A program made the position numbers and the translations under genes. Under the pieces are notes generated by a model. The model saw nothing but the letters and a program-made list of their open reading frames with translations. It ran no database searches and was not told the origin of the DNA. From positions 1 through 64,000 of the IMG/VR virus record IMGVR_UViG_3300049855_000348: a stretch of DNA of 64,000 nucleotides; one strand, written 5' to 3'. Shown piece by piece: positions 15,060 through 40,263 of the stretch. Every line of letters begins with the position of its first letter. Position 1 is the stretch's first letter.

Positions 15060-16957
15060 GCAACCTCAACCAAATCATGGAAGCGATCATGTGCTCGGAC
15101 ACCGGCGAGGAGGTCGACACCGACCCGATCGTTGGCCAGCTTGCCGGTGGAAACGCCGTCAGTTGGAAACCGTCTGACCAGATGCTTCAGGCTGCTGCCT
15201 CCCTCGGTTACGGCCAAGGCGTCTCACAGTTGAAGCCGATGATGACCCCCAAGGGTCGTCTGATCGGCTTCCCCTTCCCGACCCCACGTCCCTTTCAACT
15301 TGAAGCTGTGGATGCCGTGCTCGAAGAGTTCAAGGCCGGCAACAACGTTCTATTCGAGGCTGGTACCGGGTTCGGTAAGTCACCACTGGAGATCGGTGTC
15401 GTCTCGGCCTTCCAGTCCGCCTACCTGCTCATCGGTCGCAATGATCTGGTCGACCAATGGGAGCGTGACTTCGATCACTTCAGCAAGATCGGCTTCTACA
15501 AAGCTCGTGCTCGCTTCGACTGCACAGAGATCTCCGGCGATCGTGGCCCTCTCAACTGTTCCCAGGCCAAGACCCCCTGCGGCAAGAAGCGCCAGAGCAA
15601 AGACAACGACTGCCAAGCCTGCCCCTACGCCGTGAATCGTGATGTGGCGCTCGCCAAGCCCTACACCGTGATGACGCTGTCCCTGGGGATGACCATCTTC
15701 AAACACCTCCAGATGCACCCTGGCGTGACCAAGCGTGACGTGATGGTGATCGACGAGTGCTCAGAGCTTGAGTCTGAGATCATGAAGTTCTTCGAGTTCC
15801 AGGTGTCGACCAAGACGCTCTTCCGGGCAATTCAGAAGACGATCACCATGGGTCAGTTCTTCAGCGAAGGGGATGATTTCTATAGCCGCTGGCCGAACGT
15901 CACGCCCAGCACCAACTTCGCCATCGCCATCAACCAAATGCGCCCGATTTCAGACACCTCCGCCTGCTTCCGTTGGGCGATCGAGATCTCAGGCATTGCC
16001 CAGCAACGCATGAACTGGCTTGGTGCCGGCCAGAAGTCCGAGGAGGCTGAGAAGATCGCCGAAGCCTGCGAACAGATCATCCGCATGTGCAAGCAGGTGA
16101 TCGACGCCATCGGCGACAACGTGCCCTACTTCGGGGAGATGGTCCCAGATGAGGTTGATGGCACCTACAAGGTCCGCGTCTCCCCCCTGGAGGCTAAGGG
16201 CATGCTGAGGCGTCTCCTGGCCCCGTACGCGAAACATCTCCTGTTCGTGAGTGCTACGACCGGGTCAGCCGAGATGTTCGCTAGAACGCACTCCCTGCCC
16301 AAGGAAGCGCCTGTCGTCAAGGTGACCGCCCCGTCCGGCTTCCCGGTGGCCAATCGTATGGTCTACAACCTGCGTGCCGGCAACATGAGTAACAAGACCC
16401 AGGTGGCCGACTCCCCCTTGGTCCTGAAGATGCTGGTCGACCTCGCCACCCAACGCCAGTCAGAGCAGCCCCGGTTCGATCACATCAACCAGAAGGGCAT
16501 CATCCACACCTACAACAACAAGATCACGGACATGGTCCTGGAAGCCTTCCGGTCGGCTGGCCTTGGTCACCGGGTGATCCCTCTCAAGGGGTCTGGCAAG
16601 GCTCGTGAGCAGGCCATGGAGATCTTCACCAAGACCACCCAGCCGCTGATCCTGGTCAGTCCCTCGGCGATGCTCGGCCTGTCTCTGAATGACGATCTGG
16701 CCCGCTGGCAGGCCATCGTGAAGGTACCGTACCCGTACCTCGGGGATCAGAGCATTGCCCATCGCAAGGAGACAATCGCAGGCTGGTACGAGTGGCAGAC
16801 CGCCAAGGATCTGATCCAGACCTTCGGTCGCATCGTGCGCTCAGACAGCGACTGGGGATCCACCTACATCCTCGACGACGCCTTCACCGGGTTCTACTCC
16901 CGCAACAGTGATCTCTTTCCTGCGTTCATCCGCGAAGCCATCTGGCAGAAGCCGTGA
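15056..16957 (+). CDS. dinG: DinG/XPD-family SF2 helicase
   Basis: AGTGFGKS Walker A, IDEC, SAT, IVKVPYP, LIQTFGRIVRS.SDWG..YILD; Cys cluster. Confidence 0.9.
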   Translation: MSNLNQIMEAIMCSDTGEEVDTDPIVGQLAGGNAVSWKPSDQMLQAAASLGYGQGVSQLKPMMTPKGRLIGFPFPTPRPFQLEAVDAVLEEFKAGNNVLFEAGTGFGKSPLEIGVVSAFQSAYLLIGRNDLVDQWERDFDHFSKIGFYKARARFDCTEISGDRGPLNCSQAKTPCGKKRQSKDNDCQACPYAVNRDVALAKPYTVMTLSLGMTIFKHLQMHPGVTKRDVMVIDECSELESEIMKFFEFQVSTKTLFRAIQKTITMGQFFSEGDDFYSRWPNVTPSTNFAIAINQMRPISDTSACFRWAIEISGIAQQRMNWLGAGQKSEEAEKIAEACEQIIRMCKQVIDAIGDNVPYFGEMVPDEVDGTYKVRVSPLEAKGMLRRLLAPYAKHLLFVSATTGSAEMFARTHSLPKEAPVVKVTAPSGFPVANRMVYNLRAGNMSNKTQVADSPLVLKMLVDLATQRQSEQPRFDHINQKGIIHTYNNKITDMVLEAFRSAGLGHRVIPLKGSGKAREQAMEIFTKTTQPLILVSPSAMLGLSLNDDLARWQAIVKVPYPYLGDQSIAHRKETIAGWYEWQTAKDLIQTFGRIVRSDSDWGSTYILDDAFTGFYSRNSDLFPAFIREAIWQKP

Positions 16958-17145
16958 TCGAGATCCACATCGACGAAGTTACGTGGATGAGTGCTGATCC
17001 TGAAACACAGGAAGCAGCGAAACGTTCATGGCCTCCTGGCTATTTTCTTTTTCTACACGTGGTCGACCCAACGGGCCAGAAGCTCGGTCGCCATCGCTGG
17101 GATCGCCACTACCCATCTCTACCAAAGGAATCTTCATGTCCCTGA
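16954..17145 (+). CDS. Hypothetical protein
   Basis: 63 aa, coupled overlap with dinG. Confidence 0.45.
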   Translation: MIEIHIDEVTWMSADPETQEAAKRSWPPGYFLFLHVVDPTGQKLGRHRWDRHYPSLPKESSCP

Positions 17146-17612
17146 CCAATCTCACTGAACACGCTCAGCGTGTTCTCTCCTTCATGCTCCGTGCGAAACA
17201 GAATTGCCCGGTTGTGCCGACCTTGCCTGATGAAAAGACGCGGATTCTACGGGCGAAGTTGATCTTTGAGGAGGCGATGGAACTCATCAAGGATGGTCTG
17301 GGAATCGATGTCAGCATCGAGACCGACAAGGAAGGGAATGCTGAGTACGCTTTCAAAATCGTCGGCCCTGGTGATCTCGTGCAGATCGCCGATGGCTTCG
17401 CTGATCTCTCGGTGGTGAACACCGGCACGGCGCTCGCCTGCGGCATGGAAGATGTTCGTCTGTTGGAGATCGTCGACCGCAACAACCTCGCCAAGTTCCG
17501 CCCTGGTCATTCATTCCGCGAGGATGGCAAGTTGATCAAGCCACCTGACCACCAGAAGCCGGACTTCAAATCTGAACTCATGCTTCAGGAACACGCAGCG
17601 AAACATGCCTGA
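17136..17612 (+). CDS. MazG-like / PRA-PH NTP pyrophosphohydrolase
   Basis: LRAKLIFEEAMEL, IADGFADL, N.AK, REDGKLIKP; SD AAGGA. Confidence 0.85.
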   Translation: MSLTNLTEHAQRVLSFMLRAKQNCPVVPTLPDEKTRILRAKLIFEEAMELIKDGLGIDVSIETDKEGNAEYAFKIVGPGDLVQIADGFADLSVVNTGTALACGMEDVRLLEIVDRNNLAKFRPGHSFREDGKLIKPPDHQKPDFKSELMLQEHAAKHA

Positions 17613-17859
17613 AAAAGTTCCATTCGTCCAAGAACCAGACACGTTCATCACTGCAAAACCAGTCGAGAAAAAGGCTGGGAAGCAATGGGTCGTGAAGAAA
17701 GTTCACACCACTATCAAAATCATGGATCAAGATATTCCAATGAAAGATCCAGAAAGTGGTGTGGTTGGTTTTCTGCCAGTTCTGGATGATTATGAGAAAG
17801 CACTTCGTTTCGTAGATGGTGATAGAAGTCTTCTAGCCGGTATCGAACCGGTCACTTGA
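17605..17859 (+). CDS. Hypothetical protein
   Basis: 84 aa, coupled overlap. Confidence 0.55.
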   Translation: MPEKVPFVQEPDTFITAKPVEKKAGKQWVVKKVHTTIKIMDQDIPMKDPESGVVGFLPVLDDYEKALRFVDGDRSLLAGIEPVT

Positions 17860-18008
17860 CTCCTATGGTAGCCGTGAAAGCGCAAGGTGTAAAACCCCCA
17901 GGCGAGTAGAACGGAAGGAATCCGAAGTGGGTAGTTGACCAAGCTGTGGCCACAGCCGTCAGCGAGAGCGGAGGAGATAGGTGGGTTCGATTCCTGCCGG
18001 AGTCACCA
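17858..18008 (+). ncRNA. 151-nt tRNA-like RNA (acceptor stem, T-arm and CCA around a large insert)
   Basis: GACTCC pairs with GGAGTC-A-CCA; GTGGG-TTCGATT-CCTGC; carries the GYAA/CCCAR module. Confidence 0.65.
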
Positions 18009-18015
18009 AATGCTG

Positions 18016-18056
18016 TGTCCGTGATGGTTATTTTCTTCGGAAACCCATCACGGACA
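18016..18056 (+). terminator. 12-bp perfect hairpin (terminator or processing stem)
   Basis: TGTCCGTGATGG / CCATCACGGACA. Confidence 0.6.
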
Positions 18057-18086
18057 AGAACCTACGACACACTTGCCAAATTGTTC

Positions 18087-18114
18087 TTGCAACTGAAATC
18101 AGTCTTGCTACACC
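18087..18114 (+). promoter_or_regulatory. Candidate promoter of the + tRNA-array leader
   Basis: TTGCAA-N16-TACACC. Shares AGTCTYGCTA with the site upstream of the - leader (40952-40979). Confidence 0.4.
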
Positions 18115-18128
18115 TCCACGTACCAGCC

Positions 18129-18278
18129 ATGAGACCTCTCACCTCCATACCAGCCGTTCGCGCCACCAAGTGGCAAGCGAAGCCCATGACCAAAACGGTC
18201 AATGGCGCACAGGGTTGCTTTGGAGTGACAACTGAACGCAATCAGGCCGATCACATTCCGGAACCAGGGTTCATGTAG
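18129..18278 (+). CDS. Attenuator leader peptide of the + tRNA array (49 aa; alternative start 18186)
   Basis: MRPLTSIPAVRATKWQAKPMTKTVNGAQGCFGVTTERNQADHIPEPGFM. Its 3' end is complementary to the terminator 5' arm. Confidence 0.8.
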   Translation: MRPLTSIPAVRATKWQAKPMTKTVNGAQGCFGVTTERNQADHIPEPGFM

Positions 18279-18307
18279 CAGACAAGGGTAAAACCTCCAA
18301 GCCACAT

Positions 18308-18345
18308 GAACCCCGGGACCAAAAAGTCTCGGGGTTCTTCTTTTT
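18308..18345 (+). terminator. Attenuator terminator before the + tRNA array
   Basis: GAACCCCGGGAC-CAAAAA-GTCTCGGGGTTC-TTCTTTTT. Confidence 0.9.
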
Positions 18346-18490
18346 CTGATCCTCACGGATCTTGACAACTTTATAATCGTGGAAGCCAATGAGGGGAGAA
18401 ATCCCTTCATTCTTGGACCTACCATCCTGTTCTACTAGACAGGGAAGCCTGTGGGGAGAAATCCTCTAGCCGTGGTGGTGGTCCTGGTAT

Positions 18491-18565
18491 CGTCGAGTAT
18501 TTCAGCGGAAGAATATCTGCATGACATGCAGAAGGTCGGTGGTTCGATCCCACCCTCGACGACCA
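18491..18565 (+). tRNA. tRNA-Val(GAC)
   Basis: Cloverleaf, loop ATGACAT, encoded CCA. Confidence 0.9.
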
Positions 18566-18570
18566 AACAA

Positions 18571-18648
18571 TGCGGAGTAACTGGAGATGGAACCAGCCCA
18601 GCCTCATAAGCTGAACAAACGTGTGTTCGAGTCACACCTCCGCAACCA
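18571..18648 (+). tRNA. tRNA-Met(CAT); Met versus Ile2 not resolvable
   Basis: Cloverleaf, loop CTCATAA, CCA. Confidence 0.88.
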
Positions 18649-18649
18649 T

Positions 18650-18839
18650 TTGCAAGGACCTCTCTGCCCACCATCTCGATCCTAAGAAGAAAGAAGACAA
18701 CATCGGTACGATGGTCAGAAGAAGAGTGGCTATCAAAACTTTGGAAATCGAACTGCAAAAGTGTCTCTGCGTGTGTGAGAACTGTCATCGCAAGATCCAT
18801 GCAGGTATCATCAAACCTTTTCTCAGTGCTGGATCATGA
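18650..18839 (+). pseudogene. Truncated HNH endonuclease remnant
   Basis: HHLDP.KK...KC.CVCENCHRKIH begins right after the tRNA CCA with no start context. Confidence 0.65.
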
Positions 18840-18886
18840 CCGAACGCCTGTGGTCATTCCCTGGCGGGCACTCGGATTCTTCACAT

Positions 18887-18963
18887 GGTGGTCGTAGCTC
18901 AATGGATAGAGCACTGGACTGTGGCTCCAGCGGCTGTGGGTTCGACTCCCATCGATCACACCA
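18887..18963 (+). tRNA. tRNA-His(GTG)
   Basis: Cloverleaf, loop CTGTGGC, G-1 present, A73. Confidence 0.92.
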
Positions 18964-18970
18964 GTTCATT

Positions 18971-19047
18971 GTGCGGAGTACGCGCCTGACCCAGGCAAGA
19001 GGGTTTGCTCTAACCTCCCAGAGAAGAACGGGAGGTTGCTTCGGCAT
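18971..19047 (+). ncRNA. Putative structured spacer RNA (three hairpins in a closing stem)
   Basis: GCCTG/CAGGC, AGAG/CTCT, AACCTCCC/GGGAGGTT. Confidence 0.4.
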
Positions 19048-19121
19048 GGCTTGGTCGCTCAACGGCAGGGCGCTGGTTTGAAAAACCAGAGACGAAGGTT
19101 CGACTCCTTCTCAAGCCACCA
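19048..19121 (+). tRNA. tRNA-Phe(GAA)
   Basis: Cloverleaf, loop TTGAAAA. Confidence 0.92.
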
Positions 19122-19133
19122 TCTCCTTCTCAC

Positions 19134-19211
19134 GGTCGGTTCACTGCATGGTGCAGTGTGCGCAAGGACAGTCCCCTAAGCACGGCGGTTCGATTCCCCG
19201 GCTGACCACCA
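19134..19211 (+). ncRNA. tRNA-like RNA with no canonical anticodon loop
   Basis: GGTCGGT/GCTGACC-A-CCA, TTCGATT loop, GC-GCAA-GG..CC-CCTAA-GC in place of the anticodon arm. Confidence 0.7.
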
Positions 19212-19221
19212 TTTTTTTCAT

Positions 19222-19294
19222 CGGCTGGAATAGGTGCGCGTAAGGCATCAGATCCCCTCAAGCGATGGAGGTTCGATTCCTCCCTGGCCGACCA
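19222..19294 (+). ncRNA. tRNA-like RNA lacking a D-arm
   Basis: CGGCTGG/CTGGCCG-A-CCA, perfect GGAGG-TTCGATT-CCTCC, module GC-GTAA-GG..CC-CCTCAA-GC. Confidence 0.7.
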
Positions 19295-19296
19295 AG

Positions 19297-19402
19297 TACG
19301 ACTTCTCGGGTTCCGCAAGGAACGATCGTCCTACTGGCTACAACGGTGAAAATCCGGTGGATGCCAGAGGTGGTGGGATGGCTCACCAAATAAACTGAGA
19401 CT
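19297..19402 (+). ncRNA. Structured RNA A (paralog of RNA B)
   Basis: ACGAC start, CTCGG/CTGAG closing stem, GCAA tetraloop, AATAAA before the closing strand. Confidence 0.55.
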
Positions 19403-19407
19403 CATAA

Positions 19408-19484
19408 GCACCGATCGGCTGGTGGAAAAGCTACCTCCCTTTCAAGGAGATTCTTCGCGGGTTCGACTCCCGTTCGGTGTACCA
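19408..19484 (+). tRNA. tRNA-Glu(TTC)
   Basis: Cloverleaf, loop CTTTCAA. Confidence 0.88.
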
Positions 19485-19590
19485 ACGACGGAGCACAGTG
19501 ATCGAAAGATCGACCGGCTAGGCAACTCGCAAGAGTGCTCGAAAGGGCGGAGTCTAGTGGGGTGTAAGCACCTCGAATAAACTGTGAGTT
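19485..19590 (+). ncRNA. Structured RNA B (paralog of RNA A)
   Basis: ACGAC start, CACAG/CTGTG closing stem, GAAA and GCAA tetraloops, AATAAA. Confidence 0.55.
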
Positions 19591-19592
19591 AT

Positions 19593-19666
19593 GGTCCTTT
19601 CTGTCAGTGGCAGGCAGCCTGATTCTCAGTCAGACAACGTCGGTTCGATTCCGACAAGGACTACCA
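19593..19666 (+). tRNA. tRNA-Glu(CTC)
   Basis: Cloverleaf, loop TTCTCAG. Confidence 0.88.
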
Positions 19667-19669
19667 GCA

Positions 19670-19767
19670 AGAGCGGGACACTGGTTCGAGGCCAGTCATC
19701 GCAAGATGTAGCTCAGGGTGAAAACGTAAGGCATCAAACCCCCAAGTAATCCGGAAGAGCACGCTCT
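19670..19767 (+). ncRNA. Permuted (T-AS-D order) tRNA mimic with inserted module
   Basis: AGAGCG/CGCTCT closing; CTGG-TTCGAGG-CCAG; CATC-GCAA-GATG; TA-GCTC...GAGC. Confidence 0.55.
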
Positions 19768-19771
19768 ATTT

Positions 19772-19849
19772 GTTCCTGAGGACTAACGGCTAGGTCACCT
19801 CCCTGTCACGGAGTCATTCAAGTGGGTTCAACTCCCATCAGGAACGCCA
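19772..19849 (+). tRNA. tRNA-Asp(GTC)
   Basis: Cloverleaf, loop CTGTCAC, G73. Confidence 0.9.
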
Positions 19850-19853
19850 ACAT

Positions 19854-19927
19854 CCACGCTTCGTCTAATGGCAGGGCACCGATCTGATACGTCGGATACC
19901 AAGGTTCGATTCCTTGAGCGTGGACCA
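19854..19927 (+). tRNA. tRNA-Ile(GAT)
   Basis: Cloverleaf, loop CTGATAC. Confidence 0.88.
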
Positions 19928-19941
19928 CTTCAGTTTCACAT

Positions 19942-20016
19942 TGTGGGATGGCCTATGTGGTAGGGCACCCGGTTGTTACCCGGACTATACTGGTTCGACT
20001 CCAGTTCCCACAGCCA
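19942..20016 (+). tRNA. tRNA-Asn(GTT)
   Basis: Cloverleaf, loop TTGTTAC. Confidence 0.92.
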
Positions 20017-20021
20017 CTTTT

Positions 20022-20097
20022 GGGGTCGTAGCTCAATTGGCAGAGCACCTGTTTTGCACGCAGGATGTTAGCGGTTCAAGTCCGCTCGATTCCACCA
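20022..20097 (+). tRNA. tRNA-Ala(TGC)
   Basis: Cloverleaf, G3:U70. Confidence 0.95.
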
Positions 20098-20167
20098 CGC
20101 GGGAGTAATCTGAGAAATCAGAGAGAATTACCAGCCTCACAGCCGGCAAGGAGTAGACTGTGGTTTT

Positions 20168-20243
20168 GGGGAGTTAGCTCATCTGGTAGAGCGCGAGCAT
20201 GGCATGTTCGAGGCGAGGAGTTCAAGTCTCCTACTCTCCACCA
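20168..20243 (+). tRNA. tRNA-Ala(GGC)
   Basis: Cloverleaf, G3:U70. Confidence 0.92.
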
Positions 20244-20256
20244 CTTTCAATCATAC

Positions 20257-20340
20257 GGGCGGCGATATCTCAGAAGCGTAAGGATGATCCCCCAAGTTAT
20301 GAGAAAATCCTATGGGGTGAAAGCCCTCAACTGTCCACCA
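20257..20340 (+). ncRNA. tRNA-like RNA with an Ala-type acceptor (G3:U70, A73, CCA) and a TGAAAGC T-loop
   Basis: GGGCGG/CTGTCC-A-CCA; TGGGG-TGAAAGC-CCTCA; module GC-GTAA-GG..CC-CCCAA-GT. Confidence 0.6.
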
Positions 20341-20342
20341 CT

Positions 20343-20432
20343 CGATCGGAACGTCAGTCGCAGCGTAAGGCTTTTATCAAATCCCCAAGCTGTGCAGTAA
20401 CGCAACTGCTGGTGAAAGACCAGCCTGATCAC
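20343..20432 (+). ncRNA. tRNA-like RNA with a TGAAAGA T-loop and no encoded CCA
   Basis: GATCGG/CTGATC; GCTGG-TGAAAGA-CCAGC; module GCAGC-GTAA-GG..CC-CCAA-GCTGT. Confidence 0.55.
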
Positions 20433-20440
20433 TCTTCAAA

Positions 20441-20523
20441 CGAAACCCTGGCGGTGAAAAACCGCTTCCTCGGCGCATCCCCTACGTTGGTCTACCTCTG
20501 AAGTTTATCGACCCAGGGCTTCG
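20441..20523 (+). ncRNA. Structured RNA with a T-loop-like first hairpin
   Basis: CGAAACCCTGG/CCAGGGCTTCG closing; GCGG-TGAAAAA-CCGC. Confidence 0.45.
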
Positions 20524-20602
20524 TGTTTCTGCTAGCTAGATTCATGGGTACCATCAGCGACATCGACGATCAACTCTACGTTCAGCACATCAAGTAACGC
20601 AT

Positions 20603-20677
20603 ACGTCGATAGCTCCAATGTAGAGCGACGGTTTCCAAAACCGTTGGTTGGGGGTTCAAGTCCCTCTCGACGTGCCA
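20603..20677 (+). tRNA. tRNA-Trp(CCA)
   Basis: Cloverleaf, loop TTCCAAA. Confidence 0.92.
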
Positions 20678-20682
20678 TTCAC

Positions 20683-20757
20683 TGAGAGATAGTTCAACGG
20701 TAGAACGCTGCCCTCTGGAGGCAGATGCTAGAGGTTCGAGTCCTCTTCTCTCAACCA
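20683..20757 (+). tRNA. tRNA-Gln(CTG)
   Basis: Cloverleaf. Confidence 0.95.
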
Positions 20758-20760
20758 CAC

Positions 20761-20835
20761 TCAGGAATAGTTCAACGGTAGAACGCTGACCTTTGGAGTC
20801 AGTTGCTCCAGGTTCGAGTCCTGGTTCCTGAACCA
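20761..20835 (+). tRNA. tRNA-Gln(TTG)
   Basis: Cloverleaf. Confidence 0.95.
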
Positions 20836-20843
20836 TTTCACAT

Positions 20844-20922
20844 CTGCGTGTAGCTCAGCCTGGAACAGAGCACTTGCCTTGGGAGCAAGGGGTCGGAGGT
20901 TCAAATCCTCTCACGTAGACCA
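20844..20922 (+). tRNA. tRNA-Pro(TGG)
   Basis: Cloverleaf, loop CTTGGGA. Confidence 0.92.
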
Positions 20923-20927
20923 TTCAT

Positions 20928-21009
20928 GACGGTCGAGTCGAAAGTCGGGCGCTCCGGCATCAGATTGCAACCCTGATGACAGGTGGTTGAACTCCACCGA
21001 TCGTCTCCA
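20928..21009 (+). tRNA. tRNA-Cys(GCA) with an enlarged D-arm
   Basis: Loop TTGCAAC, U73, D region about 8 nt longer than normal. Confidence 0.8.
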
Positions 21010-21014
21010 TTCAC

Positions 21015-21090
21015 GTGTGTGTATCTCAGTGGCTAGAGAGCTTCCTTGCCAAGGAAGAGGTCGCAGGTTCAAGTCCTGTCACACACTCCA
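21015..21090 (+). tRNA. tRNA-Gly(GCC)
   Basis: Cloverleaf, U73. Confidence 0.95.
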
Positions 21091-21093
21091 ACA

Positions 21094-21160
21094 GGGGCAA
21101 ATGCGGGTTCAACTCCCGCTGCGACTTCGGTCGTATCGTCTAACCCGGTAGGACGGCCCC
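21094..21160 (+). ncRNA. Circularly permuted tRNA fold (YrlA/Y-RNA-like T-AS-D order); structure may extend to about 21280
   Basis: GGGGC-AAAT-GCGGG-TTCAACT-CCCGC-TGCGAC-TTCG-GTCGTA-TC-GTCT-AACCCGGT-AGGAC-G-GCCCC. Confidence 0.75.
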
Positions 21161-21282
21161 ACCCCGTGCGGATTGGATACCCGCACGGAATCCGAAGTCC
21201 TCAGGTTCAAGCCAAGGCAACCGCTCGCCGAGCGGAATACAAAATGCGGCTAGAGCAGGGGAGCACGAACGTGGCCCCGTTT

Positions 21283-21356
21283 GCCGATGTAGGTCAATGG
21301 TAGATCTGCTGCCTTCCAAGCAGAGGACGCGGGTTCGATTCCCGCCATCGGCTCCA
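21283..21356 (+). tRNA. tRNA-Gly(TCC)
   Basis: Cloverleaf, U73. Confidence 0.92.
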
Positions 21357-21360
21357 TCAT

Positions 21361-21436
21361 GTGTGCCTAGCTCAATGGATAGAGCATCTGACTACGGATC
21401 AGAAGGTTGAAGGTTCGAGTCCTTCGGTACACGCCA
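21361..21436 (+). tRNA. tRNA-Arg(ACG)
   Basis: Cloverleaf. Confidence 0.95.
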
Positions 21437-21469
21437 TTGCATAGCGATCTTTTTGGCTAGCATGTAACC

Positions 21470-21997
21470 ATGTCACTCAAAGATGCCCTCTTTCACTTTC
21501 GTGATCTTGGTTACTACGTTGATGATCAAGGAAATGTATTCAACCCAAGAGGAAAGATTCTTCGGTGTTCAACAAACAAAGATGGTTACAAAAGAATTAC
21601 CACAAGAATGAGAAATCATCCAGTTCATGGGGATTGGTGCCCTAAGGTTGAGGTTCACCGTCTTGCCGGTTATCAGAAGTTCGGAGACAAAATCTTCACC
21701 GAAGGACTTGAGATCTGTCACGATGATGGCGATAAGCGAAACAACGCCAAAGACAATCTGCGACTCGATACGCACAAAAGTAATATGATGGATGTTCCTC
21801 AAGAGGTAAGGATCAATAGAGCAAGACGTGCTGGTAGAGAACATGCCAAGCTAACAGATGAGCAGGTTGCTCACATTCGTTCATCTGGCATGACTCTGAA
21901 ACAGATCATGCAAACATACGGTATCAGTAAGTCTGGTGCCTCCTACGTCAGATCAGGAAAGACTTACGCCAGCCCGTGTATCCCCTCGCTTTCCTAA
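21470..21997 (+). mobile_element. HNH homing endonuclease inserted in the tRNA array
   Basis: VHRL...ICHDDGDKRNN..DNL, C-terminal HTH-like segment; AT-richer than its flanks. Confidence 0.85.
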
Positions 21998-22051
21998 AGC
22001 GGTGAAAGGGTAACTGGACACATGCAGGTTCAAATCCTGCCTCGGGTACCA
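21972..22051 (+). tRNA. Non-canonical rewired tRNA-Arg(CCT)-like, 80 nt
   Basis: Acceptor stem, T-arm and CCA; anticodon arm TCGCT-TTCCTAA-AGCGG nested inside CCC/GGG; AACTGG lies 3' of it. Confidence 0.7.
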
Positions 22052-22054
22052 CAT

Positions 22055-22132
22055 CGGGGTCCTAGTACGGGAGTGTCTGCATACCATTCGGTCACTACAG
22101 CCTCGGCGGTTCAATCCCGCCAACCTCGACCA
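22055..22132 (+). ncRNA. tRNA-like RNA lacking a D-arm (G3:U70, A73, CCA)
   Basis: CGGGGT/ACCTCG; GGCGG-TTCAATC-CCGCC; single long bulged arm ending in loop TCTGCATAC. Confidence 0.6.
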
Positions 22133-22135
22133 CAT

Positions 22136-22211
22136 GCGATCGTATTTCAATTGGAAGAACACCACCCTCCGAAGGTGGAAGGTGCAGGTTCGAGTCCTGC
22201 CGATCGCGCCA
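22136..22211 (+). tRNA. tRNA-Arg(CCG)
   Basis: Cloverleaf. Confidence 0.92.
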
Positions 22212-22214
22212 TCT

Positions 22215-22290
22215 GGTGACGTAGCTCAATGGACAGAGCTTCCAGCTTCTACCTGGATGGTTGGAGGTTCGAGTCCTCCCGTCATCGCCA
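22215..22290 (+). tRNA. tRNA-Arg(TCT)
   Basis: Cloverleaf. Confidence 0.95.
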
Positions 22291-22294
22291 TCAT

Positions 22295-22369
22295 GCTGCC
22301 ATAGCCGAGTGGTAAGGCACTTCATTCGTAACGAAGAGACCGGGTGTTCGATTCACCCTGGCAGCACCA
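22295..22369 (+). tRNA. tRNA-Thr(CGT)
   Basis: Cloverleaf. Confidence 0.9.
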
Positions 22370-22373
22370 TCAC

Positions 22374-22449
22374 GCCCCCATAGCTCAGTTGGTAGAGCAA
22401 CAGTTTTGTAAACTGTAGGTCGTCGGTTCGATCCCGACTGGTGGCTCCA
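22374..22449 (+). tRNA. tRNA-Thr(TGT)
   Basis: Cloverleaf. Confidence 0.93.
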
Positions 22450-22456
22450 TTTTCAC

Positions 22457-22530
22457 GCTGCTATAGTTCAGTGGTAAAACACGTCCTTGGTAAGGACGAG
22501 CCCCAGGTTCAATTCCTGGTAGCAGCACCA
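22457..22530 (+). tRNA. tRNA-Thr(GGT)
   Basis: Cloverleaf. Confidence 0.93.
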
Positions 22531-22535
22531 TTCAT

Positions 22536-22611
22536 CCATCAGTAGCGTAATTGGCAGCGCAGCGGGTTTTTACCCCGTGGGTTGTGAGTTCGACTCTCAC
22601 CTGATGGACCA
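22536..22611 (+). tRNA. tRNA-Lys(TTT)
   Basis: Cloverleaf. Confidence 0.92.
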
Positions 22612-22617
22612 TCGCAT

Positions 22618-22693
22618 GCATCCATAGCTCAACTGGCAGAGCACTCGGTTCTTACCCAAGGGGTTGGAGGTTCAAATCCTCCTGGATGCACCA
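22618..22693 (+). tRNA. tRNA-Lys(CTT)
   Basis: Cloverleaf. Confidence 0.92.
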
Positions 22694-22707
22694 TCATTAC
22701 ATAAGTC

Positions 22708-22941
22708 ATGCCAGCATGGAAATGGATGATCCTGAAGTTCTGTACCAGAGCGCATTTCATGCGGCTCATAGCAACCTTGATCATCCTCATCGCAGGCTTT
22801 CAATCTCTCTACTACCAGAAGATTGAAGACACGTGGTTGATCCTGGTTGGTGCAGTGATGAACCACTACTTCAACCACAAAGAAGCTGCGAACGTCACGG
22901 AAGAAGACAAGAATCCGGACGACGAATGCAAGGTCGGTTAG
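22708..22941 (+). CDS. Small two-TM membrane protein embedded in the tRNA array
   Basis: Two hydrophobic segments and an acidic tail; the stop codon lies inside tRNA-Val. Confidence 0.55.
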   Translation: MPAWKWMILKFCTRAHFMRLIATLIILIAGFQSLYYQKIEDTWLILVGAVMNHYFNHKEAANVTEEDKNPDDECKVG

Positions 22942-23006
22942 TTCAGCGGTAGAACGCTTCTCTTACACGGAAGATGTCGGGGGTTCGATCCCCTCACCGA
23001 CTACCA
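22932..23006 (+). tRNA. tRNA-Val(TAC)
   Basis: Cloverleaf. Confidence 0.93.
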
Positions 23007-23011
23007 CTTGC

Positions 23012-23091
23012 CGGTCTGTATCGGCTCGGTCTTATAAGCCGTCGAAACCGTAATTGGTTACATGAGGGTTCGACTCCCTCCAGACCGACCA
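23012..23091 (+). tRNA. Non-canonical rewired tRNA-Ile(TAT)-like, 80 nt
   Basis: Same segment lengths as 21972-22051; loop CTTATAA; CGG/CCG covaries with CCC/GGG. Confidence 0.75.
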
Positions 23092-23126
23092 CAAGGCTTC
23101 CACGATTCCCCTCCAAGGAGAACGCC

Positions 23127-23678
23127 ATGGCACCCGGTGCCTGCATAGTGCTGAACAACTCGTATGCCTTCCTCTCGATCAACAACTGGTTCGAGGCGAT
23201 GCGTCTCGTCGTCCGTGGCCGCGCCGTGCCGCTGGCAAACTACGAGACCAAGATCCGGGCAGAGCGTGAAGAGTTCGACGCACCAGCAGTCGTGATGCTG
23301 AAGCACCACGTGAACCTGGGGCGGAGAAGGCAACCTTTCACCCTGCCATCACATCGCAACATCTGGGTCCGTGATGGTGGGCACTGCGCCTACTGCAATC
23401 ACCCGCTGACGCTGCGGACAGTGACCAAGGAACACGTGATGCCCAGGTCACGCGGTGGAGAAGACAGCCTCTTGAACGTCGTGTCCGCCTGTGGCGACTG
23501 CAACGCCAAGAAGTCGAACCGCACGCCGGCAGAAGCCGGCATGAAGTTCCGTGACGGCATCGAACTGCGTCACCTCAACGATGAGGAGAAGCTGACGGTG
23601 CTGCTCAAGACCTCCCAGAGCCACGAACGGAAGACGTGGCTGGGGTTCCTCAAGAAGCAGGGTCTGACGCTGTTCTGA
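23127..23678 (+). CDS. HNH endonuclease (McrA-like)
   Basis: VLNNSY, RNIWVRDGGHCAYC, T.EHV.PRSRGG, NVV.AC..CN.KK.NRTP; SD AAGGAG. Confidence 0.88.
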   Translation: MAPGACIVLNNSYAFLSINNWFEAMRLVVRGRAVPLANYETKIRAEREEFDAPAVVMLKHHVNLGRRRQPFTLPSHRNIWVRDGGHCAYCNHPLTLRTVTKEHVMPRSRGGEDSLLNVVSACGDCNAKKSNRTPAEAGMKFRDGIELRHLNDEEKLTVLLKTSQSHERKTWLGFLKKQGLTLF

Positions 23679-23844
23679 CGGATGTTGTGCCTCCGGCTCT
23701 GATCGCTTGATCACAGTCGGAGGCGAACCGTCGAACGGACTCCCGATCGTTCCAGTTGAAGGTCCATTCGTGAACCTCTCCGCTGGATGTGGTGATGGTT
23801 CCGATCACGAGTAGAGTGCCGGATGGATAGGGGCGTGCTGGCAT
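23650..23844 (-). CDS. Hypothetical protein
   Basis: 64 aa downstream of the release factor gene. Confidence 0.45.
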   Translation of the reverse strand: MPARPYPSGTLLVIGTITTSSGEVHEWTFNWNDRESVRRFASDCDQAIRAGGTTSVRTASDPAS

Positions 23845-23896
23845 ACCGGTGAAGTCTACAGACTAGCACCGATTGCAAGTCGTCTGGGTGTGAAGT

Positions 23897-24578
23897 TCAC
23901 TCCATCAAGCCGTCCAGGTCCCCCTTCATCCAAGCACGCACCGTGATGGATCGCCCTGTGCGGTGGTCCCTCACGTTGTCGTTCTGCACCTGGATGGTGC
24001 GGATCTTGTCACCACGCTCGCCGGAGCCTATCTGCTGCCGGCGATCGTCGTTTTGATCGGTATGGTGTTGGGTAGCGATGCCCCCCGCCAGACGCTCCTG
24101 TAACAGGGCCATGGCAGCATGCTTGTTCGACAACTGGTGGCGCTCTTTGTCGGCACGGACAGTCATGCCCGTCGGACGATGGGTGATCTGCACACCCGAC
24201 TCAGTCTTGTTGCGGTGCTGACCACCTGGGCCAGATCCACGGACGGTGATGATATCCAGGTCGCGTTCATCCAGCACGAACTTCTGCTGCTGGCTTCCAT
24301 CGATCACCGCCACGGTGACCGTCGAGCTATGGACACGACCCTTGCGCTCAGTGGGTGGAACCCGCTGCCAACGATGGCCGCCTGCTTCTTGGCTGAAGGC
24401 TTCTTTGGCTCCCTTACCAGTAACGGTGAGCCGCAGAAAGCCGTGAGACTCTTGATCCACTACAACTTCAAAGACCCCTCCGCGCTCCCCATTTGCGATA
24501 GATGGTGAGGTGTTCGCGCACGAGCAATCGTGCGTCCTCGCCGCCTTCAGCGGCTCTGATTTCGAGGTGGATAGTCAT
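23897..24578 (-). CDS. Class I peptide chain release factor lacking domain 1 (about 226 aa), needing a +1 programmed frameshift at 24468-24473
   Basis: Frame 0: MTIHLEIRAAEGGEDA...RRGL-TGA. +1 frame: EVVVDQ...EAGGHRWQRVPPTERKGRVHSSTVTVAV...GSGPGGQHRNKTESGV..KIRT. Confidence 0.88.
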
Positions 24579-29753: not shown

Positions 29754-30350
29754 ATGCGCTTCTTCCTCCTGCTCCTCCTGTCCTTCTCCACTCTGTTCGC
29801 CGGTGATCCTCCGGCTGCCGAGGCCAAGCTGCCTGCCGATGTGCAGAAGGTAGTCGATGAACGTGATGCTGCGGTGGCCAAGGCCAAGGCGGTCTTCGAT
29901 GCGGCTCAGGCCAAGGCGACGACCGAGGCTATCGCCAAGCTGGAGAAGGTGGTTGTCGCCATCACAAAAAAGGGCGATCTCGCCAACGCTACGGCTATCC
30001 AGAAGTTGGTCGACGAGTACAAGGCCGGGCTTCCGGATCTATTGGGTAAGAAACCAGAAACAAAAATCGATCTTGAGGAGGCGATTGTTGGTGTGAAGTG
30101 GAAATTTTACTGGCAAGGTCTTGGTGGTGAAAACAAGATCATGAGATTTGCCCGTAAGGGTGTCATTAGTGAAGGGTCCAACTTCGGTGAAAACAGTTAT
30201 CGCATCAAGGACGGTGTTCTACAACTTCTCAATCAGAATGGTGGAATACACAGCACTCTCACTCTGAGGGCTGATGGGAATCTTGAAAGTGGAGACACTT
30301 CTGAATCAACCTGGAAGGGGAAGTGCTTCTTGATCAAGGCCGAGAAATAA
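29754..30350 (+). CDS. Secreted or periplasmic protein with a signal peptide
   Basis: MRFFLLLLLSFSTLFA signal, Ala/Lys-rich helices, SD AAGGA. Confidence 0.7.
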   Translation: MRFFLLLLLSFSTLFAGDPPAAEAKLPADVQKVVDERDAAVAKAKAVFDAAQAKATTEAIAKLEKVVVAITKKGDLANATAIQKLVDEYKAGLPDLLGKKPETKIDLEEAIVGVKWKFYWQGLGGENKIMRFARKGVISEGSNFGENSYRIKDGVLQLLNQNGGIHSTLTLRADGNLESGDTSESTWKGKCFLIKAEK

Positions 30351-31146
30351 TCCTGATCAGTTCGTTGTTTTTCACGTCCTGACAGAATGATGGGCGATCA
30401 ATAAGAAGGCTGTCGTTTTCAAATACGTCGATCGACAGCCTTTCAACTTCTGCCCATCTATAGAGAAAATGAAAGTGGTAGGAGTAGATCTCGAAGTCTG
30501 ACTCAACCTGAAGAAGTCGACCATCGATGTAGCGAACGGCTGGATGAATGCCTTTGTGATTCTGAAGAGAGTCGCGGCCAACGTGCTTGGCTCCAACTCG
30601 CTTCATCGCTATGGAAAACCACCGCTCATCAAGACAATGATGTTTTTCAGTATCGCAGATCTTTTGCCGAAAGTCCAGATCTTCTGAAAATTCTTTGAAC
30701 CACTTTTCTTGAGTAGAAGAAAAGTAGTCATTTTTGAACCATGTCCAATATCCTCCGATGCGATCATAATGACTGATTATTTCAACATCGTCAGAGATCA
30801 GATTTTTTACTAGATCGTAGTTTCCGTACATGGCATCCATGTCGGTCCACATAAAACAATCGTAATCTTTGATGATGTCGTTGAAGATCCAATAGAAGAG
30901 CGGTCGAAGATCACAAATTTTATAGGCATGCGGAAGACCCTTGAACTCTGGAATTATCTTTCTTACACGCTCGTTGATGTCCTCCATCGACATCTTTACG
31001 AATTCCATGTTAGGATACATCTTGGGAGGAGGTGTATCAGCAATAACGATGTACTTGTCGATTCCCTGCTTCGCACCTGAACGTCCAGTCAGGTGCCAGA
31101 TCTTAGGGTAAGGTCCCTGCCAAACGTTGAGCATGCAAGAACGCAT
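30334..31146 (-). CDS. Glycosyltransferase-like protein (GT-A, DUF6625-like)
   Basis: YKICDLRP...I...YDCFMWTDMDAMYGN, DE..F motif. Confidence 0.75.
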   Translation of the reverse strand: MRSCMLNVWQGPYPKIWHLTGRSGAKQGIDKYIVIADTPPPKMYPNMEFVKMSMEDINERVRKIIPEFKGLPHAYKICDLRPLFYWIFNDIIKDYDCFMWTDMDAMYGNYDLVKNLISDDVEIISHYDRIGGYWTWFKNDYFSSTQEKWFKEFSEDLDFRQKICDTEKHHCLDERWFSIAMKRVGAKHVGRDSLQNHKGIHPAVRYIDGRLLQVESDFEIYSYHFHFLYRWAEVERLSIDVFENDSLLIDRPSFCQDVKNNELIRIISRP

Positions 31147-31147
31147 C

Positions 31148-39878: not shown

Positions 39879-39967
39879 TGGCGGAAGTGGCACGAATCGA
39901 ACGTGCAAGACCCGTGAAGGTCTGTTGAGGTTCAAGCTCAGTCCCCTCGCCTATAGGGAGCACTTCC
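39879..39967 (-). tRNA. tRNA-Ser(TGA)
   Basis: Long variable arm, G73, CCA. Confidence 0.9.
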
Positions 39968-39972
39968 ATGAA

Positions 39973-40064
39973 TGGCGGATACGGCAGGATTTGAACCTGC
40001 GGGTGACTTGCGCCACCTCCTAGTTTCGAGCTAGGTGCGATAAGCCGGGCTCTGCCACGTATCC
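39973..40064 (-). tRNA. tRNA-Ser(CGA)
   Basis: Long variable arm, G73. Confidence 0.92.
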
Positions 40065-40069
40065 ATGAA

Positions 40070-40162
40070 TGGCGGATTGCTAGGGAGTCGGACCCTCAAC
40101 GTGTTTCCACGTTTCATCGCTTTCCAGGCGAGTACGGTTAGCCACCACCGTCAACACAATCC
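40070..40162 (-). tRNA. tRNA-Ser(GGA)
   Basis: Long variable arm, G73. Confidence 0.88.
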
Positions 40163-40167
40163 ATGAA

Positions 40168-40259: not shown

Positions 40260-40263
40260 ATGA

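Follow-up and report, generated by a model that had tools for sequence, protein, structure and literature searches.

In the ribosome-mediated transcription attenuators of amino-acid biosynthesis operons (trpL, hisL, leuL, pheL, thrL and ilvL), a short ORF with regulatory codons is followed by an intrinsic terminator and a mutually exclusive antiterminator, and the position of the ribosome chooses between the two structures (PMC1183508, PMC3082878). The leaders of these operons are 14-32 codons long. Some leaders report the shortage of more than one amino acid, as in ilvGMEDA (Ile/Leu/Val) and thr (Thr/Ile), but these cover two or three amino acids. Translation-apparatus genes are controlled by stalling at cognate codons as well; such leaders precede the synthetase genes pheST (the pheM leader) and, in Bacilli, hisS/hisZ (PMC2965389), the targets being protein genes in each case. 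T-box riboswitches also sense tRNA status and switch between terminator and antiterminator, but bind uncharged tRNA directly and need no translation. In mycobacteria, short polycysteine ORFs that start at or very near the 5' end of the transcript, without a Shine-Dalgarno sequence, respond to cysteine and control operons of protein genes; the effect is described as attenuation of operonic expression, not control of tRNA genes (bioRxiv 10.1101/834739). Finally, in global slowdown sensors, such as ermC (PMC2965389), the outcome depends on how fast the ribosome moves through a leader rather than on one amino acid. The cat leaders and the pyrBI coupling attenuator belong to the same group; these systems respond to antibiotics or to UTP-dependent polymerase pausing and have no codon set matched to the regulated genes.

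Here we describe two units with the anatomy of leader-peptide attenuators that precede the two tRNA clusters of a large phage, within a window of 64,000 nucleotides (the whole stretch analysed, positions 1 to 64,000 of the IMG/VR record IMGVR_UViG_3300049855_000348). To our knowledge, leader-peptide control of tRNA genes has not been reported previously. Compared with the biosynthetic attenuators, the putatively regulated genes are tRNA genes rather than enzyme genes and belong to a phage; the first leader is long (46-50 codons) and holds one or two codons for each of about 27 tRNA species, from 17 amino acids, instead of a run for one amino acid; the 5' UTR is very short or absent; and no Shine-Dalgarno sequence is present. 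Compared with the synthetase leaders, the sensed molecule and the product are of the same class, tRNA, which would give direct product feedback. Rfam searches at permissive thresholds gave nothing near a gathering score over the leader, an upstream tRNA-like element or the second unit. In particular, no T-box or specifier-loop match was found in 16500-24500 at E <= 1, or in 17840-18495 and 40750-41050 at E <= 10, and none of the amino-acid operon leader families (Trp, His, Leu, Thr and Phe) was reported; the only "leader" hit, rnk_pseudo, scores 20.6 bits against a gathering score of 55 and covers little more than the terminator hairpin.

The first leader ORF runs on the plus strand from the ATG at 18129 to the TAG at 18276-18278 and encodes 49 residues, MRPLTSIPAVRATKWQAKPMTKTVNGAQGCFGVTTERNQADHIPEPGFM. 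An earlier note, made from the sequence alone, had claimed that codons 7-49 contain no Ser, Leu or Tyr but include all 17 other amino acids, that all four Thr, Gly and Pro codons, both Lys, Gln and Phe codons, and AGA, ATA and TGG are used, and that the end of the ORF pairs with a terminator in front of a tRNA array for 17 amino acids. This observation is correct and far beyond chance. The segment CCAGGGTTCATGT (18264-18276; region 2), which comprises the last four codons and the first base of the stop codon, pairs at 12 of 13 positions with ACATGAACCCCGG (18304-18316; region 3). Region 3 overlaps the stem of the intrinsic terminator (18308-18347; 12-bp stem and 6-nt loop at 18308-18337, followed by the T-run TTCTTTTTCT) and can pair either with region 2, forming the antiterminator, or with region 4, forming the terminator. 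The array (18491-23089, plus strand) consists of 28 tRNA genes for 17 amino acids, with HNH endonuclease ORFs interspersed. ARAGORN finds 25 tRNAs for 15 amino acids; a tRNA-Asp(GTC) at 19772-19849 appears at a lower threshold (Rfam, 42.9 bits), a tRNA-Cys(GCA)-like gene with an oversized D arm lies at 20928-21009, at the position where relatives have tRNA-Cys, and an Ile(TAT)-like gene lies at 23010-23089; these three genes are weak or atypical.

To estimate how often such composition arises by chance, a calculation that the note had itself called for, we compared the ORF with a random model and with real 49-residue windows of this stretch. The probability of all 17 amino acids in 49 residues is 0.036 in the model and 0.023 in real windows, that of 43 codons without Ser, Leu or Tyr is 1.9e-4, and the joint probability is 2.5e-6. 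The ORF contains 37 distinct codons, against 27.5 +/- 3.3 in real windows, and samples 26 of the 28 tRNA species of the array, against 17.4 +/- 2.4 (maximum 24 in 2,135 real windows).

The ATG and the reading frame are conserved in ten syntenic relatives from independent metagenomes, and the terminator and the alternative helix in the nine whose contig reaches that far. The frame stays open through length differences (138-153 nt) and is the only sense frame free of stops in all 10 orthologs. As to the choice between the starts at 18129 and 18186, which the note had singled out for verification, the ATG at 18129 is invariant whereas the one at 18186 is not conserved in relatives. The orthologs sample 25-27 of the 28 tRNA species and use 32-38 distinct codons within 45-50 codons. 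Furthermore, 25 species are present in all 10 orthologs, 16 of them with no shared alignment column: Cys moves from column 30 to column 25, Asp and Asn swap, and the Ile, ACA, AAA and GAA codons wander; rare codons change position between orthologs but are never lost. With the conserved columns fixed, the observed coverage has P of 0 to 0.012 under genome codon usage and of 0.003 to 0.33 under the family's own codon pool, and lies above the null mean in all 10. The orthologs are related, and hence their coverage values are not independent; under the conservative family-pool null, four of the ten sequences (the window and the relatives labelled L008, L009 and L026), that is, two of about five lineages, are not individually significant. 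The strict absence of Ser, Leu and Tyr is particular to this genome: orthologs carry 2-5 such codons, and one has Tyr.

Both alternative helices show covariation. The antiterminator helix is 80% paired overall, its core (alignment columns 25-33 with 65-73) being paired in 8-9 of 9 sequences, and five pairs changed on both sides (GGGTTCATG/CATGAACCC, GGGTTTCATG/CATGAAACCC, GGGTCTCATG/CATGAGACCC and GGGGTCCG/CGGACCC), whereas slid controls are only 11-44% paired; RNAalifold predicts this helix on its own. The terminator is 91% paired in the alignment, with 6 covarying pairs. In the window, the folding energy of the terminator is -22.8 kcal/mol, against -29.6 for the antiterminator hairpin; across all nine sequences, the nascent RNA folds into the antiterminator at -24 to -37 kcal/mol and the terminator alone folds at -18 to -23. 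Region 3 starts 26 nt after the stop codon, a geometry in which, judging from known footprint sizes, a ribosome at the stop would cover region 2 but not region 3.

Upstream of the ORF, promoter-like boxes TTGCAA (18087-18092) and TACACC (18109-18114) are separated by a 16-nt spacer, the second box ending 14 nt before the ATG. TTG and (G)nTA are invariant columns in the 9-sequence alignment while the flanks vary (boxes TTGCAA, 16 nt, TAnAnn). The second box is weak by the E. coli consensus, and a consensus scan did not call the site because the last base of this box is not T. Downstream of the terminator, a conserved 26-nt motif (18362-18387) and a structured spacer precede the first tRNA (18362-18490 in total); these could be a processing signal or a weak internal promoter. 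The note had named bypass of the terminator by an internal promoter as a result that would count against it. The motif, which has a TATAAT-like box, lies 15 nt after the T-run, with 143 nt between the T-run and the first tRNA, and recurs after the terminator of the second unit. In the window, TTGACA and TATAAT lie only 4 nt apart, there is no -35 box at 16-18 nt, and the last T of the -10 box is missing in most relatives. A classical sigma-70 promoter here is unlikely but not excluded, and for unit 1 these observations do not decide between a single upstream promoter and an additional internal one; two other units, described below, leave 31 nt and about 2 nt between the T-run and the first tRNA.

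The decisive support comes from outside this locus. A paralogous unit (40979-40801, minus strand) precedes the Ser/Leu/Tyr tRNA cluster. Its promoter-like boxes (40979-40952; TTGCCA, 16-nt spacer, TATGAG; the second box ends 10 nt before the ATG) match the layout of unit 1. Its leader ORF (40941-40861) encodes MRRSLSLSLLSLSLSYSETGIRSTLE, beginning MRRSLSLSLLSLSLSYS; codons 4-17 are all Ser, Leu or Tyr, all six Ser codons are used, and 16 of 25 residues are Ser, Leu or Tyr against a background of 0.18 (P = 4e-7). By our reading of the codons against the anticodons predicted by ARAGORN, which is not a computed result, 7 of the 8 tRNA species of the cluster are sampled. The switch (40887-40801) has the classical four-segment 1:2 / 2:3 / 3:4 layout, with the regulatory codons in segment 1. 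Region 2 is ACCGGGATTCGG (40887-40876), and the terminator found by the scan lies at 40835-40809, with its T-run at 40808-40801. The full-length minimum-energy fold pairs the Ser/Leu codons with region 2 and forms the terminator; with the 5' part removed, regions 2 and 3 form the antiterminator at -33.4 kcal/mol. The cluster itself (40769-39879, minus strand; Leu x4, Tyr, Ser x3) starts 31 nt after the T-run. A 2x2 Fisher test of leader by array gives P = 4e-8. Unit 2 was not compared with relatives because no contig in our set extends to that region.

Analogous arrangements are found in a cultured, distantly related jumbo phage, Tunturiibacter phage Tunturi_5 (PP885688.1), in which three tRNA clusters each follow a short ORF, an antiterminator and a terminator. 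The amino acids of the leader's own cluster make up 52%, 69% and 77% of the three leaders, against backgrounds of 19%, 41% and 48% (P = 4e-5, 5.5e-4 and 3.9e-5, respectively), and those of the other clusters are depleted. Cys codons appear in the leader of the cluster that holds tRNA-Cys, as they do in the phage described here. In one cluster (cluster A), the first tRNA starts about 2 nt after the T-run.

Taken together, these findings support the interpretation of the earlier note, namely a leader peptide that acts as a general sensor of any charged-tRNA shortage, with the corrections that the lack of Ser, Leu and Tyr is not conserved and that most conserved peptide motifs coincide with RNA helices and so are not evidence of a peptide function. 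We consider it likely that the locus is the 5' control unit of the main tRNA operon of the phage, a classical ribosome-mediated attenuator applied to tRNA genes. In this view, transcription starts at the conserved sigma-70-like promoter a few bases upstream of the ATG, and a ribosome translates the leader while RNA polymerase moves on. If decoding is fast, the ribosome would reach the stop codon and cover region 2, leaving region 3 free to pair with region 4, and transcription would end before the tRNA genes. If the ribosome is delayed anywhere in the leader because a charged tRNA is scarce, region 2 would stay naked and pair with region 3 as soon as the latter is made, forming the more stable antiterminator, and polymerase would read into the 28-tRNA array. 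With at least one codon for nearly every tRNA species of the array, shortage of any of these would open the gate, and the Ser/Leu/Tyr-run leader would gate the other cluster in the same way; the phage tRNAs produced would relieve the stall, closing a negative feedback loop. The anatomy, its conservation, the covariation of both helices and the match between codons and tRNAs are demonstrated by the present analysis, whereas translation of the leaders, the sense and timing of the switch, and its biological purpose, which could be coping with host tRNA loss or cleavage during infection, are inferred. All the evidence is computational: transcript ends, ribosome occupancy and read-through upon depletion of charged tRNA were not measured. 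Furthermore, most tRNA species are sampled by only one or two codons, which in classical attenuators gives a modest response.

We examined three alternative explanations, each of which appears unlikely. Under the first, the ORF is an ordinary microprotein gene with its own promoter and terminator, the tRNAs are transcribed from a separate downstream promoter or by unregulated read-through, and the codon content and the pairing have no regulatory role. The peptide alignment indeed has 11 invariant and 9 nearly invariant positions, distant pairs have dN/dS of 0.1-0.25, gene callers predicted this ORF in several metagenome contigs, gp308 of Tunturi_5 is annotated as a hypothetical protein, and the TATAAT-like motif follows the terminator. 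However, the coding signature is weak, which counts against our own reading as well: dN/dS ranges from 0.1 to 1.2 and is near 1 for close pairs, variable columns number 30, 25 and 32 of 44 at codon positions 1, 2 and 3, respectively, and the conserved residues coincide with RNA helices. The C-terminus changes (GFM, GLMQR, GSE) while pairing with the terminator arm is kept by compensatory changes, and no Pfam or PHROG family matches any leader peptide. A microprotein does not explain why 5 of 5 leaders in two phages are enriched in the amino acids of their own downstream cluster, the 14-codon Ser/Leu/Tyr run, or tRNAs that start 2-31 nt after the T-run.

The little three-base periodicity of substitutions, the lack of a Shine-Dalgarno sequence before any leader, the strong folding of the region (z = -3.9 for 18100-18350), the several covarying helices and an open antisense frame are compatible with an untranslated structured RNA, either a small RNA or a processing or timing element of the tRNA precursor, with the open frame incidental and the switch set by a protein, a small RNA or uncharged tRNA rather than by a ribosome. 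This possibility is countered by the invariant ATG, the sense frame kept open through length differences, the absence of any Rfam family near its threshold, and the codon-to-tRNA matching in five units, which has meaning only if the codons are read. It is also possible, although again doubtful, that the leader is translated and controls the terminator but reports overall translation or coupling speed, as in pyrBI or ermC-like sensors, or works with the opposite sign, the near-complete coverage being a by-product. The lack of individual significance in four sequences, the weakness of one or two codons per tRNA as a sensor, and the antiterminator being the thermodynamic default, such that any delay would give read-through, favor this view. 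Conversely, unit 2 and the three Tunturi_5 leaders are plainly specific to the amino acids of their clusters, rare single-copy codons of unit 1 relocate without loss, and coverage exceeds the null mean in all 10 orthologs.

Why phages carry tRNA genes, and how they use them, is still debated, with codon-usage matching, compensation for host tRNA decay and escape from tRNA-cleaving defences among the proposed reasons, and the regulation of phage tRNA arrays is largely unknown. Attenuators whose leaders mirror each cluster would show that the phage measures decoding capacity codon by codon and answers with the matching tRNAs, making the supply-on-demand idea directly testable, and would extend a textbook mechanism to RNA genes and to viruses, with a new design principle, a leader that samples nearly the whole tRNA set of its operon. 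A broader hypothesis, which we regard as somewhat more likely than not, is that large phages keep their tRNA supply under closed-loop control, every cluster being gated by a leader written in the codons that its tRNAs read, so that loss of a tRNA through host shut-off, starvation or anticodon-cleaving defence nucleases would switch on exactly the cluster that replaces it. The 17-amino-acid leader would then be the first "pan-codon" attenuator, kept by selection for at least one codon per tRNA species, in a system that occurs in at least two distantly related jumbo-phage lineages, one of them in culture. The two leaders would be compact, orthogonal sensors of charged-tRNA pools that could serve as reporters, the pair Tunturi_5 / Tunturiibacter psychrotolerans offers an experimental system, and the signature (short ORF, terminator, tRNA cluster, matched codons) is easy to search for in other phage genomes.

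A blastn search of the region against cultured phages matched only single tRNA genes. Scans of IMG/VR with the helicase, the 84-aa protein, its family alignment and two leader DNA patterns returned only the window's own contig. The non-syntenic MazG-like homologues (loci L002-L005 and L027) and homologues of the 193-aa neighbour of unit 2 (L039-L047) carry no tRNA arrays. A single pattern scan of metagenomes returned 13 stretches, all chance matches without similarity to the region; the pattern was too specific for the group of relatives represented by L028, which reads GTGGCAAGCCAAG. For the upstream 151-nt tRNA-like element, a tmRNA and an intron-containing tRNA were considered, but neither is supported by ARAGORN with introns allowed or by Rfam.

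Several other structural features were assessed. The antisense 105-aa ORF (18108-18425) was rejected as a gene: it stays open only because the leader lacks TTA, CTA and TCA codons, and the polarity of the promoter and terminator is on the plus strand. A long-range helix closing the whole ORF appears in the minimum-energy fold of the window but was rejected because it is not conserved in L008; pairing of the start-codon region with region 2 or region 4 does recur, albeit not in L032 (another relative), and is only a possibility. Within the ORF (18162-18205), two conserved hairpins, which by inference may be RNA polymerase pause or timing elements, are formed by GCCAC-CAA-GTGGC (18162-18174) and CCCATGACC-AAAAC-GGTCAATGG (18183-18205); both are RNAalifold consensus helices (columns 79-91 and 101-122), the second with compensatory changes, and both appear in every single-sequence fold.

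The window is the first 64 kb of a 220,489-bp IMG/VR contig (IMGVR_UViG_3300049855_000348), and the open reading frame (ORF) at positions 18129-18278 encodes MRPLTSIPAVRATKWQAKPMTKTVNGAQGCFGVTTERNQADHIPEPGFM. The features listed for this ORF in the earlier note are all present in the sequence, and its observation is confirmed. Codons 7-49 lack Ser, Leu and Tyr and contain the 17 other amino acids; all four Thr, Gly and Pro codons occur, as do both Lys, Gln and Phe codons, and AGA, ATA and TGG. The segment CCAGGGTTCATGT (18264-18276) is complementary in 12 of 13 positions to ACATGAACCCCGG (18304-18316), which overlaps the 5' arm of a 12-bp intrinsic terminator (18308-18337) followed by a T-run. 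The tRNA array behind the ORF does serve 17 amino acids, although default ARAGORN finds only 25 tRNAs for 15 amino acids and misses three genes: tRNA-Asp(GTC) at 19772-19849 (+), detected by Rfam (42.9 bits) and by ARAGORN at a lower threshold; a tRNA-Cys(GCA)-like gene with an oversized D arm at 20928-21009 (+), exactly where relatives have tRNA-Cys; and an Ile(TAT)-like gene at 23010-23089 (+), which Rfam scores weakly as tRNA-Sec. A further weak Rfam tRNA hit (28 bits) lies at 21972-22048 (+). The Ser, Leu and Tyr tRNAs form a separate cluster on the other strand (39879-40769).

To estimate how often such a composition arises by chance, a calculation that the earlier note had itself asked for, we used the amino acid and codon usage of the long ORFs of the window as the background. 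The probability of finding all 17 amino acids in 49 residues is 0.036 under the model and 0.023 in real 49-residue windows, that of 43 codons free of Ser, Leu and Tyr is 1.9e-4, and the joint probability is 2.5e-6. The ORF uses 37 distinct codons, compared to a background of 27.5 +/- 3.3, and samples 26 of the 28 tRNA species of the array, compared to 17.4 +/- 2.4 (maximum of 24 in 2,135 windows). Even among random strings of codons other than those for Ser, Leu and Tyr, the probability of sampling 26 or more species is 2.5e-4.

No cultured phage is close to this genome, and searches of IMG/VR returned only the window's own contig. Relatives were reached through the MazG-like neighbor and then through an alignment of the adjacent 84-aa protein. 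Nine further contigs from NCBI, Logan, JGI and ENA (denoted L008, L009, L026, L028, L030, L031, L032, L033 and L034) share the same layout of helicase, small protein, leader and tRNA array; L033 is cut off by the contig end. All ten sequences, including the window, retain the ATG in the context (G/C)(T/C)CATGAGA and an open frame of 45-50 codons, the only sense frame without stops in all ten, and the nine that are not cut off (all but L033) retain the terminator and the alternative pairing. All have a promoter-like pair of boxes (TTGCAA-like, 16 nt, TAnAnn) that ends 10-14 nt before the ATG, whereas the sequence around the boxes varies. None has a Shine-Dalgarno sequence, and we infer that the transcript would have a 5' UTR of a few bases at most.

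In the alignment of nine sequences, the core of the antiterminator helix is paired in 8-9 of the 9 sequences, with five pairs changed on both sides; sliding the partner strand by 1-3 columns drops the pairing from 80% to 11-44%. The variants show this directly: GGGTTCATG/CATGAACCC in the window group and L026, GGGTTTCATG/CATGAAACCC in L028, GGGTCTCATG/CATGAGACCC in L030, L031 and L034, and GGGGTCCG/CGGACCC in L032. In these variants, the end of the peptide changes from GFM to GLMQR or GSE while the RNA pairing is kept. The terminator is 91% paired, with six covarying pairs, and RNAalifold, given the whole leader, predicts the antiterminator by itself. In every sequence, the nascent RNA, before the 3' arm of the terminator is made, is predicted to fold into the antiterminator at -24 to -37 kcal/mol, whereas the terminator alone reaches -18 to -23 kcal/mol. 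The default would therefore be read-through, and termination would need something to hold region 2 (the 5' strand of the antiterminator), which consists of the last four codons plus the first base of the stop codon. Given the size of the ribosome footprint, a ribosome that has reached the stop codon would cover region 2 but not region 3 (18304-18316, overlapping the 5' arm of the terminator), which begins 26 nt further on. Two conserved hairpins inside the ORF, and a further helix, account for most of the invariant residues (A-T-x-W, T..V, V...H), and the start-codon region can pair with region 2 or region 4 (the 3' arm of the terminator) in most sequences. The anatomy, its conservation, the covariation and the codon matching are results of the analysis; the sense of the switch, the role of the hairpins, which we treat as possible pause or timing elements, and the biological trigger, which could be host tRNA decay, starvation or anticodon nucleases, are inferences. 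Neither transcription nor translation was measured.

The strict absence of Ser, Leu and Tyr stressed in the earlier note is not conserved: orthologs have 2-5 such codons, and L031 has a Tyr, although this is still below the 8.5 expected. What is conserved is coverage. Each ortholog samples 25-27 of the 28 tRNA species, and 25 species are represented in all ten orthologs, 16 of them without any shared alignment column. The single Cys codon sits at column 30 in nine sequences and at column 25 in L032, Asp and Asn swap places in L008, the Ile(ATY) codon is found at column 47, at 39, or at 19 and 36, and the single ACA, AAA and GAA codons wander. When the 16 family-conserved columns were kept fixed and the other 29-34 columns were redrawn, the observed coverage had P values of 0 to 0.012 with genome codon usage and 0.003 to 0.33 with the family's own codon pool, and was above the null mean in all ten sequences; a Fisher combination over about five lineages, which is only a rough estimate, gives approximately 6e-5. 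Conservation at synonymous sites in related phages had been named in advance as a test of the leader reading, and the comparison by codon position shows that the constraint at the protein level is weak: dN/dS values are in the range of 0.1 to 1.2, and variable columns number 30, 25 and 32 of 44 at the three codon positions, respectively, which fits a leader better than a microprotein. A 105-aa antisense ORF (18108-18425, minus strand) spans the whole leader and was annotated by one gene caller in L034, but the register-matched antisense frame is open, in 9 of 10 orthologs, only because the leader lacks TTA, CTA and TCA codons; this ORF is an artefact of the Ser/Leu depletion.

Examination of the region upstream of the Ser/Leu/Tyr cluster revealed the same design on the minus strand (40801-40979), outside the coordinates of the original observation, and this second unit became its main support. 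Promoter-like boxes TTGCCA and TATGAG, 16 nt apart (40979-40952), are followed after 10 nt by an ATG at 40941 and a 26-codon leader ORF encoding MRRSLSLSLLSLSLSYSETGIRSTLE that ends at 40861, then by a terminator at 40835-40809 with its T-run at 40808-40801; tRNA-Leu starts only 31 nt further on. Codons 4-17, 14 consecutive codons, are all Ser, Leu or Tyr, all six Ser codons are used and, by our reading of the codons against the predicted anticodons, seven of the eight tRNA species of the cluster are sampled. The predicted full-length fold pairs the Ser/Leu codons (segment 1) with GGAGACCGGGA (segment 2) and forms the terminator; with the 5' part removed, as behind a stalled ribosome, segments 2 and 3 form an antiterminator of -33.4 kcal/mol, the textbook arrangement. 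The two terminators and the motif after them are nearly identical, so the two units are paralogs; unit 2 was not compared among relatives. The 2x2 table of leaders against arrays gives a Fisher P value of 4e-8.

An independent case is found in a cultured phage. The nearest cultured relative by helicase (28% identity) is Tunturiibacter phage Tunturi_5 (PP885688.1; 309 kb, 43 tRNA genes; PMC11924767), a jumbo phage of Acidobacteriota, in which the tRNAs fall into three clusters, each preceded by a short ORF and a terminator (44063-44220, 2403-2613 and 2129-2295 of the loci L037, L036 and L035, respectively, extracted from this genome). In cluster A, the leader MKTLCLSSYCLSSSLSLSDGWDLRTGRDADMI precedes tRNAs for Leu, Cys, Leu, Leu, Tyr, Leu, Ser, Ser and Ser, the first of which starts about 2 nt after the T-run. 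In cluster C, the leader is gp308, a 49-aa product annotated as a hypothetical protein and rich in D, R, K, V, I, G, W, E and M, and the tRNAs that follow are Trp, Asp, Met, Lys, Val, Arg, Glu, Ile and Gly. In cluster B, MQHVSTFRFAVPATAGNPAGQQGTNACDTGGGKVVKW, the start of which is uncertain, precedes tRNAs for Gln, Gly, Thr, Pro, His, Ala and Phe; the leader ORFs of A and B are unannotated. The 3x3 table is diagonal: own-cluster residues make up 52%, 69% and 77% of each leader, against backgrounds of 19%, 41% and 48% (P = 4e-5, 5.5e-4 and 3.9e-5), and residues of the other clusters are depleted. Cys is telling in this respect: in Tunturi_5, tRNA-Cys sits with Leu, Tyr and Ser, and that leader has two Cys codons, whereas in the window tRNA-Cys sits in array 1 and the Cys codon is in leader 1. 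In all three units, the nascent RNA is predicted to pair the 3' end of the ORF with the 5' arm of the terminator. The paper that describes the phage mentions neither leaders nor attenuation.

The class of mechanism is classical leader-peptide attenuation (PMC1183508, PMC3082878). The present units differ in that the target is a set of tRNA genes, the owner is a phage, the code is partitioned between paralogous leaders, one leader samples nearly every tRNA species of its operon, and initiation appears to work without a Shine-Dalgarno sequence, possibly in a near-leaderless manner; leaderless regulatory ORFs are known in mycobacteria (10.1101/834739). The element is not a T-box and matches no Rfam leader family. 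Full-text searches, in a library that is incomplete and does not cover the older subscription literature, found no report of leader-peptide or attenuator control of tRNA genes or phage tRNA arrays. The interpretation given in the earlier note, that of a leader peptide sampling the codons of the tRNA array, is supported, and the case becomes much stronger once the second unit and the Tunturi_5 units are taken into account. The finding appears to be of high interest, and with Tunturi_5 a cultured phage-host pair is available for direct tests.

Bypass of the terminator by an internal promoter had been put forward beforehand as an outcome that would count against this reading. A conserved motif (TTGAMAACYnTAnAnnCGTGGAAGCC) that includes a TATAAT-like box follows the leader terminators in the window (18362-18387, plus strand, and 40783-40800, minus strand) and in relatives, and in unit 1 lies between the terminator and the first tRNA, where it is followed by a conserved hairpin and a structured spacer of about 100 nt before tRNA-Val. 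The motif could be a processing signal or a weak promoter, which is unresolved: an internal promoter is not excluded, but the box in unit 1 has no -35 partner and the motif recurs in unit 2 directly before the tRNA, and we therefore lean towards a processing or structural role.

Just upstream of the leader promoter, a candidate tRNA-like RNA of about 151 nt is located at 17858-18008 (+), with counterparts in L008 (3803-3955), L009 (6407-6557), L026 (~1340-1493) and another contig, L025 (from ~1430). It has an acceptor stem with compensatory changes between relatives, a canonical T arm (TTCGATT loop), discriminator A and an encoded CCA, around a conserved insert of about 110 nt, but ARAGORN, with introns allowed, and Rfam find nothing here; the element is absent from the L028, L030, L031, L032 and L034 relatives. 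A hairpin follows at 18017-18055. Within the tRNA array, the plus-strand intervals 21470-21997, 22974-23678 and 18621-18839 contain HNH homing-endonuclease ORFs (Pfam HNH_3, HNH_5) and a short ORF after tRNA-Met that carries a CxxCHxxxH motif and, by our reading, may be an HNH remnant, although Pfam found no family; relatives carry HNH genes at different positions in the array. In L034, the first tRNA after the leader (~1907-2110) seems to be interrupted, or followed by an insertion, after the anticodon region, and this may be an intron or a mobile insertion. Finally, a low-GC island at 30001-34000 (0.43-0.46, against about 0.56 elsewhere) contains a 953-aa ORF on the minus strand (31148-34009) and may be recently acquired DNA.
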